Shown: positions 23,171-29,738, counted from the stretch's first letter. The stretch: 64,000 nucleotides of DNA from Trichosphaerium sp. ATCC 40318 (GCA_038496445.1 JALMLS010000577.1:248001-312000); one strand, 5' to 3'. The notes: generated from the sequence alone by a model not told the origin. A program made the numbers and translations.

Positions 23171-23402
23171 TTAAAATAGCGCTCTATTTCCTCACAAATA
23201 ATGTACCGTTACATTCGATAGAACAGGAAATCGGTAACGTTTGCAGTAAATAACGCCAACCATTTAAAAAACTGAAAACTGTGAAGTGATGGTTCGGCTT
23301 AAGCCAGGCAGGAACTGAAATAACACGAAAAGGATCTAAACAACACCACGCAATAGGTGGAGTGTAGCAGTGATCAGTTGAGGCTTGTTTGTGTCACATC
23401 CT

Positions 23403-26400
23403 ATGGAAAAGAGTGTACAATTAAACACTGATGACGGTACCAGCGTATTTCATAACGGCAATTTGCTAAATTACATACTTAGCCCTGGAGCCTGAAACTG
23501 ATATCAATTCACAGCTCAGCGAACAGCTTAGCCGCATTATATCATTAAAAGAAACAATAATAGACTTTTACGAAGATGACGAATTTCAAGTGCGTTTAAT
23601 GGCACGGACGCCACCCTTATTCGCGCGTAGGCAGTATTAGACTTGTTTTCGAACATGAAGGAAGTGCGTGTCGTTACCAAAAATCTGTTTTCTGGGACAT
23701 CCCCTTTTGCCACTGTCCGCACAATGTCTCAGGAGCACTTGAGCAGAGTAAGTTAGATTGGTTGGTACAAAAGCTAACCAAAAACAGCTTGAAAGTGATG
23801 TTGTTACTGTGGCACTCTACGGCCGCACGAAGGCAGGAAAAAGTTCCCTCGGAAACGTCATTCTAGGAGAAGATGTACTACCAACAGCAGAAACACCGTG
23901 CACATCCTGTGCCTGCATCATAAATTCAGGAAAGCTGGATAAAGACAGGTACTAAAATATGCAGCTACTCGCATCTAAATGGACAATATAGGGCAGCTAT
24001 GGTAGTTTTAGAGCCCGATGCTAATATAGATGCAACGTGGAATCGCCCTGACGTACAAGACGAGCATCTGGAACTTAAAGCTTCATTGCAAACTCTCGTA
24101 AAAAACCCAGTAATTTCAAATGACAACCTCGGTTAGTTATCATTTTTCATTACGTAACTGAGCTAACAATGACAAGATAAAATACTTCCCCTAGTAATAG
24201 ACATGCCCGCAGTACTACGCGACTGCCCTCTTGTCAAGGAAGTCCAATTACAACGGTAACCGGAAACAAATATATTCCAAATCTTTCTTTGACACCTGTC
24301 ACATTTATAGCCCAATTTTTGGTATTGATAAACCTGGTATACGTGTCATCGATACTCCCGGAGAAAAAGAAAATTACCTCTTAAATTTAAGAGCCAAACA
24401 CAGTGCGCAATCAGCATCGCTGATAATCCACGTTTTTCGGTGTCAGGACGCTATGGTATGGACATGTAAAGATAACAATTTACTTACCTATTAAAAGAGA
24501 GACGAGCTAAAATTTATCGAACGCCAGCACGCCATTGGCGGGGATATTGTATTTGTTCTCAATATTTACAGCACTGACACAGAAGAAGCGATATTGAAGG
24601 CAGAGAAGAGGTTACGCCAACAGTTAGCACAGTTAAAGGATCCTAAAATCTTTAAAGTACGTGCAATGTAATTTCGAGTTTGAAGGTTAACTTTTACACC
24701 TAGTTCAATGTAAAGCAGTGTAATTATGGTGATTATAGCCCAGATTTCGTTGCCTTCAAGTTGGCACTTTGTGAATGTTTACAAATACGGTCTAAAGCCA
24801 TGGTATCAGCTTTGTTGAGCAATATGTATCAATTGATCCGGTACGTAGCTGCAACCAAATACGTGCTTATCTTCTGTAGTGTGCAACATTTGTTTGTGTC
24901 CAAGATTATAGCATCCCATGTTAGGACGTCAGTTAAGAGACCAGACAATGAACTATCTAGGATTGATTACAATGTGATTAAGCAAAAAGCAAAAGAAATA
25001 CAACTAGAAATACTAGCATTCGAAAAAGAAGCAAGACAAAAAGTAAAACAAATGCAAGTGAAGTTTAAGGCGCATTACTTGAAAGTAGTGGAAAAATTTA
25101 GAAACAAAGTACTCGGTAACGGCATACTAGATGTACGCGCATCTATTTCGTATAGTTCATCAACACGCTCTTTACGAAGAGCTTTGTTATTAATGTACTT
25201 CGGTATTTAGGATATGGAACCTAGTGTTCCCTTTGAAGTACAAGAGACTACATTCTGGAAAAGATTCGAAGAGAATTTCAAAGGGAAACGTTTCACTGAC
25301 TATGACTCTGAGTTATTTGAGCAATTGAAGATAAATTTTGAAAGAGAATCACGCAGCTCTTTGATTACCTTCGTCCGTACAGAGCGAACAAAACTGGATA
25401 CGTAAGTGCTGAGTATATTATTGATAAGAAACATTTAATTTGATGCAAAAAAGGTGGATAGAAAGTGAAGTAGAACGCTTGCAAGCAGTCACAGAAGAAG
25501 TCTTTGCCAATATTGGTAGTTCAATTTGGTATGTTTGAACGAAAGTATTTTTTTGTTTATTGTAACATGGTTAACATGGCTACAGGTCATCTCAAACACG
25601 CGAATTGTTTGTTAGAGTTGAAGGACAACTCTCCAAATTCACTCAGGTAACGTTAATTTATTTTTGTGGGTTTCTTTCTAACAGTTGGTAGTGGAATGCT
25701 CAACGATTGGGTATGCTAAATTTGTAGTTTAGTTGGTTTCTCTTATTATTTTTCTAGTACCTCCTGCTGCAGGTTTTGGTGTCGCTTCAGTTGGTATTGC
25801 CAGTACCGGCGTAGCGTTATTTGGTACAATAATATGACCCACTATTTATTAACCCCTTATAGCTGCTGGCACGTTGTCTGCAACAGCTACAGTAGTAACT
25901 GGCGGAGTAGCTCTGCTAGTCACAACCGCAGTAGCTGCAGCAGTTACCCTTGCAAATGTGAACTGGAAATCGACGATGTCGTATTCGCCTGGAAAAGACG
26001 AACAAGGCACGTGATTTATTTTAGCGTGCTTTTCTTAACAGCAATGTAGAAACCAAAGAAAGAATATTTGACCTGCTAATAAAGACATTAAATGAGCTCA
26101 CAAAGAAACCAGAGTTCGGAGATTTGGCAGCTGGTGCTCTTGGCAACCTTGATGGGAAAATTGATTACATCAGTAATTGCCTCAACGTCTGTCTATTAGA
26201 GATTGAAAGTATTGTAGAGGTAAGATTGGCAGTTTATTTTTTTGTTAGTCTAACAAGTATGGAAGGCTCAACAACTCTCTTTGGACTTAGATTATAATAA
26301 ACTCTGCGAATACTTATGGATGAGAGACTTCTTGACAGAGTACACAGTAAAACTTATGGAAGAATGCGCTAGATTCGATTTTAAAACTACAGAAATTCTG

Positions 26401-27643
26401 CGTGTACTCGTTGAGAAGAAAGCAGCTTACAACACAGTACGAAAAACACCATTATCACCTTTCTCTTGACGCTCATATGATTATATAAGATGCCAATGTG
26501 TTTCGTATGCAAAGAGCCAATTCTTCGTTGTAACCATTTGTGTACCTATTGCGGTTACAAGTTACAAGATCAATGTCCTTTATGCAGCAGCACGACTGAG
26601 TGGATTGTAGATAAAATAAAGCCGCACAAAAATTCCAGTGGCGGTGAAGTACGTGACACTACAAAGCGAAACAAAGCGTAATTAATTCTTCTAGGATATA
26701 TTGAACAAGTTCTTGCACTTCAAGCCGACATTGTCACAATTTTCATCATTGATTTATACGACTACTCAAGAAGAATTCAATAGCGCTGACCTATACGCAC
26801 AACTAGAGTACGGTATAGAATCATTATAAGTCTAATTGTAGAGTAGACAACACGTAAATACCATCAAACAATTTTGTATTTGGTTTAAACAACACCACAC
26901 CAAATCGGATGTTAAAGAAGTTGCGCGTACATTGAGATATATACTTAATAAGATCGTTCGCAACTTTACGCCGAAATATGGTCTCCCTTATGATGTTAAA
27001 AAGTTGATTCTTGCTTGGGTACACAGAAAACTATTTGAGACGCGAGACGCTATATCTCCTCTACTGTACCGCATATACAAAAAACACGTACGTGTCAATA
27101 GGCTACGTAGTCCCCAATTAGTAGTTTTTCAAGTCTAACTTTCCTAATTAGTATGACTCGCAAGATAACGCGTTCATAAAGGTAATACTAGAGCACACGG
27201 ACGATCCCTTGCCTAGTGTACGTGTTCCGAAATAAGGAATTCTTCTACTTACTATCTTTACGGAATAGGTCCTCGAAGGTTCTACGCACTGGAAAGATGC
27301 TGTAGATGCACTAAAACGAATGTCTATAGCGAAATCTCCGTACAAAAAATTATCTCACCTAAAAGAAATGTCTCAATGCATTCACAGGACAAACCCAAGC
27401 ATGTACGGCTATTATTGAAAAAAAAATTATTCTTGCTGAAAAGTTTTTCGTAGGGGAGCTGATGACGCATGGCCTGCGATAATGTATGTTATAACGCAAG
27501 CAAAGTACCAGTATATGCTATCGGAAATCAACGTTGTTTACGATAGTTTGTATGAGTTTGTCGAAAACGCTGATAGATACCTTCTATGCACCGTACACGC
27601 TATTGTCACAGACATGGAGAACATTTTAAACAATGCCCCGTAA
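23403..27643 (+). CDS. Mitofusin/bacterial-DLP-type dynamin GTPase with hydrophobic hairpin, zinc ribbon and C-terminal VPS9 domain
   Basis: G1 ALYGRTKAGKSSLGNVILGEDVLPT, G2 PCT, G3 IDTPG, degenerate G4 FVLNIY. Coiled helices, then an Ala/Gly/Val/Thr hydrophobic stretch, then CFVC...CTYC...CPLC. VPS9 core: AKSPYKKLSHLKE...MGADDAWPAIMYVITQA. Confidence 0.78.
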
Positions 27644-28159
27644 CTTCAAAAAACTGAGATAGTCCGTAAATAGTAACCACTACTTGTAAATAATCCCCTT
27701 GTAAACGTATTGTATAGTAGCAGAAACGCTTGTAGCTCAGTGATTGCTAAAATAAAAACGAGATAAAAATATTTATACCGTTGCGTAGTTTATGGCGTTT
27801 CCCTTGTTCCAAATGAGTTGTGTGGCGTTATACGCGTCGACACAAATTTAGTGTACTGCACGGAGCTTTAAAAACAGAGTAGCGCTCTAAACCACCTGAG
27901 AGTGTTCCACATAGCGAATCAATGCGGTTAACGAACGTAATTTAGCGTTTGACGCTAAACTGTGAACGTTTAACACTTGAGTGCACCAGTGCATTCATAG
28001 CCGTGTGAATTGCAAAACACAACAAATGAAGTTCGTGCAACTGCAAGTAGATTGCGTTAGTATTCTCCACCAAATTATCATAATAGCGTAGGTTAGCAGT
28101 GCAAACTGCTATAAACACCAGTGAAACGAATTTAGCCTAAATAGTTAGAATAGTTTGTG

Positions 28160-28267: not shown

Positions 28268-29738
<1,471 letters not shown>

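Follow-up and report, generated by a model that had tools for sequence, protein, structure and literature searches.

In a 64,000-nt stretch of the Trichosphaerium sp. ATCC 40318 assembly (GCA_038496445.1, JALMLS010000577.1:248001-312000; in the following called the window, with positions counted from its first nucleotide), we analyzed a gene on the plus strand at 23403..27643. We consider it probable that this gene encodes a single protein of 1048 residues, which combines a dynamin-like protein (DLP) module with a two-zinc finger and a Rabex-5-like tandem of a helical bundle (HB) and a VPS9 domain, and which acts as a membrane-anchored tether or remodeller with its own guanine nucleotide exchange factor (GEF) for Rab5-family GTPases. 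The architecture is well supported and appears undescribed. It is a new domain architecture assembled from known families and is shared by a small conserved family.

A first-pass annotation of the window, made from the sequence alone, had proposed one polypeptide joining a dynamin of the mitofusin or bacterial dynamin-like protein (BDLP) type to a zinc ribbon and a VPS9 domain, with all pieces joinable in frame by short introns. The single polypeptide was borne out by collinear full-length relatives, found as one transcript open reading frame (ORF) and two intronless genomic ORFs, and the joining in frame by a model with 23 GT..AG introns and an ORF of 1048 aa.

The first relative was identified by comparing the longest open segment of the stalk, which lies in its outward leg, exhaustively with 1.84 billion proteins in HMMER. 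This search returned a single match, P0001 (972 aa, E 6e-4), a complete ORF in a Trinity transcriptome of Rhizamoeba saxonica (Amoebozoa, Tubulinea) with Dynamin_N (45.9 bits), VPS9 (39.2 bits), a Gly-rich hairpin and the same cysteine pattern. A longer isoform from the same organism, P0006, is likewise a complete ORF (1038 aa). The family also includes P0002 (1163 aa) and P0003 (1170 aa), each encoded by an unbroken 3.5-kb ORF on contigs of up to ~378 kb from the ENA metagenome project PRJEB11402; the neighbouring genes are eukaryotic (Rad9, V-ATPase subunit d, DnaJ). The co-occurrence of Dynamin_N and VPS9, which the first-pass annotation had suggested looking for, was seen with Pfam in all relatives: Dynamin_N scored 31.6-45.9 bits over profile positions 1-167, and VPS9 scored 39.2 bits in P0006, 30.4 in P0002 and 26.8 in P0003.

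Gene model and continuity with the relatives

The window is recognizable as eukaryotic by its GC content of ~38% and by ORFs interrupted by short GT..AG introns. The transcript evidence consists of the contigs of one small cDNA-type run, placed on 23300-27800. We built the gene model from the fixed cDNA junctions and from homology, picking GT..AG introns for the uncovered middle. The resulting coding region (23403..27643, plus strand) is collinear with its homologs and has 24 exons and 23 introns, coding for 1048 aa and a stop. All introns are GT..AG, 31-78 nt long, and all pieces are joined in frame; the donors are mostly GTA(C/A/T), and in many introns a branch motif resembling CTAAC or TTAAC precedes the acceptor by 12-24 nt. 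A fewest-introns model obtained by dynamic programming was also open, but was rejected as it used wrong frames and lost the P-loop.

Eight introns, the first six and two of the last three, are exact in the cDNA contigs. These are 23437-23482, 23590-23630 (with a loose end) and 23748-23787 in the 5′ part, 23949-23991, 24132-24176 and 24256-24310 in the GTPase (G) domain, and 27088-27151 and 27403-27453 in the 3′ part. The contigs differ from the window in single bases at 23539, 23850, 23853 and 23871, which suggests that the RNA came from another strain or allele than the assembly.

Aligned with P0001, the model gave one high-scoring segment pair over aa 66-1043 against 1-959 (28% identity, E 3.6e-123), and with P0006 an alignment over aa 21-1043 (1,023 residues, E 2.4e-126). 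Both alignments cross aa 747/748, the suspected break between the DLP half and the zinc-finger-VPS9 half, which in the gene corresponds to predicted intron 18 (26437..26489, plus strand, 53 nt, GTACGA..AG). In a four-way alignment the model is collinear with P0001-P0003, and the exon junctions predicted in the part without reads are free of indels. The first-pass annotation had named a break near 26440-26490, leaving two separate transcripts, as the finding that would speak against it. The relatives are continuous across this point, while in Trichosphaerium reads over 26440-26490 are missing. The database tests reported below were run on exon translations or on the relatives, not on the joined 1048-aa model.

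Domain organization

The protein begins with an acidic, helical region (aa 1-86, exons 1-3, 23403..23747), which precedes the G domain and can be aligned with the N-terminus of P0006. Residues 1-22 of P0006 (MIDGDSPFKSLQKKCQ...) are nearly repeated at 67-88, where P0001 starts. A short tandem duplication, alternative first exons or a Trinity assembly artefact could account for the repeat.

The dynamin-type GTPase domain follows at aa 87-315 (23788..24706), with G1 GRTKAGKS at 23821-23844, G2 TPCTS at 23893-23907, G3 DTPG at 24351-24362 and a degenerate G4, LNIYSTD, at 24558-24578. Pfam Dynamin_N matched the single exon 23788-23946 with 40.6 bits (cut-off 27) and the G3 exon 24312-24455 with 12.6 bits, and the P-loop exon scored 23.4 bits with LeoBC, a bacterial-dynamin model of PADLOC. 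The GKS, G2 Thr and DxxG cores are invariant in the alignment of the four family members. The G1-G3 motifs and the atypical NIYS that the first-pass annotation had read here are thus all in place, and the G4 aspartate is missing across the family.

The helical stalk, likewise anticipated, could be located in two legs. The outward leg (aa 316-555, 24707..25697) carries a conserved QHLF(V/L)S(K/R) motif at 24881-24907, and its exon junctions are all gap-free against the relatives. The return leg (aa 617-747, 25967..26436) was delimited by alignment and shows conserved LEIES and YxxLC motifs. Between them lies the hydrophobic hairpin (aa 560-616, exons 14-16, 25710..25966), at the place where one of roughly 40 residues had been expected, but longer. 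Its 57 residues are uncharged and rich in Gly, Ala, Ser, Thr and Val, with a 19-residue Kyte-Doolittle mean above 1.4 throughout. Hairpins of equivalent length and position, flanked by predicted helices, are present in P0001-P0003. This order of G domain, helices, hydrophobic tip and helices is the one in BDLP1, LeoA/LeoBC and mitofusin/Fzo1 (Michie et al. 2014, PMC4159319).

We then compared the DLP half with known families; for BDLP and LeoBC, how far the match extends was tested on the relatives, with which the window gene is collinear. By sequence, BDLP is the closest of the solved structures to P0001: Nostoc BDLP (2j68) matched residues 20-423 (E 8e-5), from the P-loop well into the stalk and through the region equivalent to the outward leg. 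The match to MFN2 was weak (E 0.037-0.24, ~55 residues of the G domain). A family profile matched best the Campylobacter DLP 5owv (E 9e-6), then BDLP and IniA. LeoBC scored 50.8 (P0006) and 43 bits on relatives; in P0002 the match covers residues 35-699 and profile positions 71-556 of 601 (E 8.5e-12), thereby taking in nearly the whole DLP half with the hairpin region and the return leg. Look-alikes proposed by a language model were all bacterial Dynamin_N clusters of 580-710 aa (score 0.83), which we take as a lead only, and a sequence-feature search with the stalk exon gave noise only (unrelated families, scores ≤0.81). These comparisons support placing the GTPase half in the BDLP/LeoBC/mitofusin class, with a clearer affinity to bacterial DLPs than to mitofusin. 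The class given in the first-pass annotation therefore stands; its mitofusin side rests on the weaker match.

Downstream of the stalk we found an eight-ligand zinc finger (aa 751-779, 26499..26585) of the pattern C-x2-C-x6-C-x-H-x-C-x2-C-x7-C-x2-C, in which all eight ligands are invariant in the four sequences. The three CxxC pairs from which a zinc ribbon had been proposed are present, but they belong to a finger with RING-like C3HC4 ligand order, whose loops are shorter than in a canonical RING (first loop x6, H-x1-C). On 26490-26648, the Pfam families DZR (20.7 bits) and zf-C3HC4_3 (18.0 bits) both scored under the cut-off of 27, and no match to A20, MIU or CUE was found.

The VPS9 domain occupies aa 942-1048 (27269..27640). 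Pfam VPS9 (PF02204) matched 27269-27400 (18.2 bits, profile 1-32) and 27455-27640 (20.2 bits, profile 45-102) as two collinear exon pieces, each under the cut-off of 27 when taken alone but adding up to ~38 bits. The aspartate-finger motif GADDAWPAIMYV at 27455-27490, with GADDAWP within it, is the VPS9 core read in the first-pass annotation and a fuller consensus than that of the relatives. Its Asp is invariant in the four sequences and is aligned to GADEFLP of Arabidopsis Vps9a (AtVps9a); phmmer aligned the motif of a relative to GADEFLP..IYV of the same protein. We take this Asp to be the catalytic residue of VPS9, D185 in AtVps9a and D313 in Rabex-5, and the PDB title "AtVps9a(D185N)" among the fold matches described next is consistent with this identity.

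The preceding region (aa 839-941, exons 21-22, 26845..27217) is predicted to be a helical bundle. It was modelled in P0006, a relative with 43% identity, of which residues 800-1038 were submitted to AlphaFold2 (AF2) with the window exons added to the alignment, except for exon 22 and the end of exon 21, which MAFFT had misaligned onto the GADD region. The model reached a predicted local distance difference test score (pLDDT) of 63 and a predicted template modelling score (pTM) of 0.54. Its helical region superposes on the HB of Rabex-5 and AtVps9a. The eight best PDB matches in Foldseek were all HB-VPS9 tandems of these two proteins (probability 0.93-1.00, TM-score on the query (TMq) 0.33-0.59, ~230-255 columns), and the next match followed with a probability of 0.54. 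The C-terminus, for which a failure to match the VPS9 hidden Markov model or fold had been named as a possible refutation, thus matched both, the former in exons and relatives and the latter in the P0006 model. The zinc finger (44% identity to Rhizamoeba) and the VPS9 domain (43% to P0006) are the best-conserved parts, compared with 24-32% elsewhere, which argues that the C-terminal module is functional.

Proposed function and alternative readings

We propose that the hairpin of ~55 uncharged residues would enter and leave the bilayer on the same face, either dipping into it or spanning it twice, so that the G domain and the VPS9 domain would both be cytosolic. By analogy with BDLP, mitofusin and atlastin, GTP-dependent pairing of G domains and opening of the stalk may tether, bend or fuse host membranes. 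On the same membrane, a Rab5-family GTPase (Rab5/21/22) would be loaded with GTP by the VPS9 domain, whose aspartate finger is invariant. With the GEF tethered to the DLP, Rab activation would then be confined to, and possibly gated by, the nucleotide-driven conformation of the DLP. The zinc finger, which belongs to a fold class other than A20, may bind ubiquitin, a partner or lipid. The site would most likely be an endocytic organelle of a phagotrophic amoeba, such as an early endosome, a macropinosome or a phagosome. The earlier suggestion that membrane remodelling would be coupled to the activation of Rab5 on endosomes or phagosomes is plausible. A more far-reaching version is rather doubtful: here the protein would be a eukaryotic, non-organellar descendant of a bacterial DLP, possibly acquired by gene transfer, that forms a self-contained endocytic fusion or tethering machine, switches on its own Rab5 via VPS9 and in this way, on phagosomes or macropinosomes, couples Rab activation to the mechanical merging or the repair of membranes.

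Rab5-family GEFs are normally soluble and are recruited to endosomes by ubiquitin, effectors or lipids. To our knowledge, fusion-type dynamins (mitofusin, atlastin, BDLP) occur in mitochondria, the endoplasmic reticulum, plastids and bacteria, not in the endocytic pathway. A membrane-inserted GTPase of the BDLP class joined to an HB-VPS9 GEF would imply a direct link in cis from a mechanochemical GTPase to a Rab switch. The fusion would be a natural experiment on the spatial confinement of GEF activity, on whether the conformational cycling of a DLP can gate a GEF, and on the redeployment of bacterial-type dynamins in eukaryotes. Conservation along the entire length of these proteins speaks for a specialised, selectable role in amoeboid phagotrophs.

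Several observations weigh against this reading, in the RNA as well as in the domains. The sole run has no reads over 24357-26772, so that continuity in the Trichosphaerium genome rests on homology and splice logic. A ninth junction, seen in the sole contig covering it, joins 27217 to 27264 (GT..GG), 5 nt upstream of the canonical AG; a transcript with this acceptor shifts the VPS9 frame and stops after 13 codons. The canonical AG at 27267-68 keeps the frame, with PLPS followed by VLEGSTHWKDAV, homologous to PFPSTLKNEEGEHWTKAV of a relative. Because the 27264 acceptor breaks the frame and the frame from 27269 matches the relatives, the productive mRNA must use acceptor 27269. The 27264 junction itself could be an aberrant isoform or reflect a strain polymorphism making an AG at 27262-63. 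The contig with this junction starts at ~26850 behind a SMART template-switch oligo (23 nt, GGTATCAACGCAGAGTACGGG + CT, directly before 26850, at 26827-26850) and could mark an internal start. Together with the mid-locus that no reads bridge, this would suit two genes or transcripts: a BDLP-like GTPase reaching to ~26469, and a zinc-finger and VPS9 product from ATG 26490 or an RNA from ~26850. Retention of intron 18 would bring in a stop at 26467-26469, and the next exon opens with ATG 26490. However, only 20 nt separate this stop from the ATG, intron 18 has the GTACGA donor and AG acceptor typical of the locus, and the relatives are continuous at the junction, one as mRNA and two as intronless ORFs. 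Position 26850 is no more than 6 nt away from where exon 21 is predicted to start and falls inside conserved coding sequence (RQHV, compared with KQHV in the relatives), and exon 21 has no in-frame ATG in the VPS9 frame, only short out-of-frame upstream ORFs. Because of this conserved start and the lack of an in-frame ATG, the contig is best read as a truncated cDNA, and we regard a division into two genes or transcripts as very improbable.

On the side of the domains, G4 is degenerate throughout the family, reading NIYS in the window and NVDE and NRKP in relatives. Of the (N/T)KxD consensus the Asn alone is kept, and the position of the Asp in NAWD of BDLP is taken by S, E or P, so that guanine specificity, or even activity, is uncertain; a conserved D/N-T two residues past G4 might substitute for the missing Asp. 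A full-length AF2 model of P0001 from a three-sequence alignment was unusable (pLDDT 37.8), and the placement of the hairpin at the stalk tip is therefore read from sequence order only. VPS9 appears in the window only as two sub-threshold pieces, P0003 stays under the Pfam cut-off, the Pro of GADxxxP is lost in three relatives, and the Foldseek E-values are modest (3e-3 to 9e-2). Some of this would fit a single fusion protein in which VPS9 serves mainly as a Rab-binding address tag or pseudo-GEF that brings the DLP to Rab5-positive membranes, as would the low Pfam VPS9 scores of 27-39 bits and the pLDDT below 50 over the last ~40 residues of the modelled domain. We consider this unlikely, as the catalytic Asp is invariant in 4/4 sequences and aligned to the GAD of AtVps9a, few regions of the protein are as well conserved as VPS9, and the whole HB-VPS9 tandem fold is retained in the model.

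It is distinctly unlikely that the protein sits, like mitofusin/Fzo1, in the outer mitochondrial membrane and recruits or activates Rab5 there or where mitochondria contact endosomes. Its P-loop presumably resembles that of mitofusin, and the weak MFN2 match (E 0.037) points the same way. The domain order also matches that of mitofusins (PMC4159319). Nevertheless, the sequence affinity is clearly stronger to bacterial DLPs. In addition, VPS9 substrates are classically endosomal, and the N-terminus is acidic and has no presequence, although this last point is weak because outer-membrane proteins need none. A defence-type large GTPase, comparable to the LeoABC/DynA anti-phage dynamins or the animal GBP/IRG proteins, might instead act on pathogen vacuoles with VPS9 redirecting Rab identity. 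The best family-level match of the DLP half is indeed the PADLOC defence model LeoBC, but what this match shows is shared ancestry with bacterial DLPs rather than a role in defence. The protein has no sensor domain, there is no family expansion, with a single copy within the 64-kb window, and a scan of IMG/VR viral contigs found no giant-virus relatives. A defence role is therefore quite improbable, and we keep the anchored tether or remodeller with its own Rab5-family GEF as the preferred reading.

Family extent, related architectures and locus details

The family is tiny, with four genes in three lineages (Trichosphaerium, Rhizamoeba saxonica and uncultured eukaryotes) among billions of proteins searched. 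Searches with the protein gave no members beyond these. The DLP half alone as a protein query found only its own cluster, the family profile contributed no more than two generic members of the dynamin family, whose matches covered 6% of the query, and no relatives turned up when JGI metagenome contigs and IMG/VR viral contigs were scanned with degenerate patterns. The contigs L001 (with P0003) and L002 (with P0002) have the gene order Rad9, abhydrolase, PfkB kinase, family gene, 418-aa protein, DnaJ and V-ATPase subunit d. At ~52% GC and with an intronless family gene, compared with the ~38% GC of the window, they are from two related organisms or haplotypes distinct from Trichosphaerium.

The first-pass annotation did not know this architecture as a described family, and in the literature searched we found no paper describing a DLP-VPS9 fusion. 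A eukaryote-wide survey of Vps9 proteins lists "P-loop NTPase + Vps9" in Mayorella and Dictyostelium without ever mentioning dynamin (Herman et al. 2018, PMC6032885). BDLPs and mitofusins were expressly left out of a census of dynamin-related proteins from 2023 (PMC10280142), and a review of Dictyostelium dynamins makes no link to Vps9. The surveyed proteins closest in description are Mayorella CAMPEP_0174232008, a P-loop NTPase with Vps9, and DdRabexA, which has PX, P-loop NTPase and Vps9 domains; NTPase-VPS9 fusions thus exist in Amoebozoa. Compared by description only, these proteins differ in that no dynamin-type domain, hairpin or zinc finger is mentioned for them (PMC6032885), and the PX domain of DdRabexA is absent from the Trichosphaerium protein.

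With bacterial DLPs (BDLP1, 2j68; LeoBC of enterotoxigenic Escherichia coli; Campylobacter DLP1/2, 5owv) the protein shares a Dynamin_N G domain with G1-G3, a long helical neck and trunk, and a Gly-rich hydrophobic membrane element between outward and return helices. Its DLP module of ~745 aa is comparable to the BDLP1 chain of 695 aa, and the significant sequence matches extend past the G domain. Unlike these proteins, it is eukaryotic and encoded by an intron-rich gene, its G4 lacks the aspartate of NxxD, and it carries ~300 additional C-terminal residues with the zinc finger and HB-VPS9 that no bacterial DLP has. Compared with the BDLP paddle, its hairpin (~55 aa) is longer, fully uncharged and more like a transmembrane hairpin.

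Mitofusin/Fzo1 has the same succession of G domain, helices, hydrophobic membrane region and helices, and the protein is similarly predicted to be a membrane-anchored, fusion-type member of the dynamin superfamily with a weak match to the MFN2 G domain. However, this similarity is far below that to bacterial DLPs, and mitofusins have neither the zinc finger nor the VPS9 domain. With Rabex-5, Vps9p and AtVps9a it has in common the C-terminal ~240 residues, modelled as HB and VPS9, with Rabex-5 and AtVps9a the aspartate-finger motif GAD(D/E)xxP..YV, and with Rabex-5 a zinc finger N-terminal to the HB-VPS9 tandem. It differs from Rabex-5 in that the finger has eight ligands in C3HC4 order in place of A20, that the protein ends with VPS9 and has no Rabaptin-binding coiled coil after it, and that the GEF is predicted to be permanently tethered to a membrane-inserting DLP, in contrast to recruitment by ubiquitin or Rabaptin.

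The transcript extends beyond the coding region on both sides. At its 5′ end, cDNA contig 1 begins at 23333, giving a 5′ untranslated region (UTR) of at least 23333..23402. This region is without ATG, an in-frame TGA at 23379-23381 lies just upstream of the start codon, and 23403 is the first ATG of the cDNA. At the 3′ end, contig 4 reaches 27736, giving a 3′ UTR of at least 27644..27736. In the model, the donor of intron 16, a 19-nt exon and two short introns are predicted only, and none of these details alters the frame or the architecture. Intron 16 could use the donor at 26011 (31-nt intron) or at 25981 (61-nt intron), both in frame; the predicted 19-nt exon lies at 25692-25710, and the short introns at 26808-26843 (36 nt) and 24841-24879 (39 nt). 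The latter has a length that is a multiple of three and contains no stop codon, and if retained it would add 13 residues, YVAATKYVLIFCS, in frame; none of the relatives has an insertion at this place. A conventional actin gene (28489-29738, plus strand), interrupted near 29000-29030 by one or more short introns, follows ~750 nt after the cDNA 3′ end.

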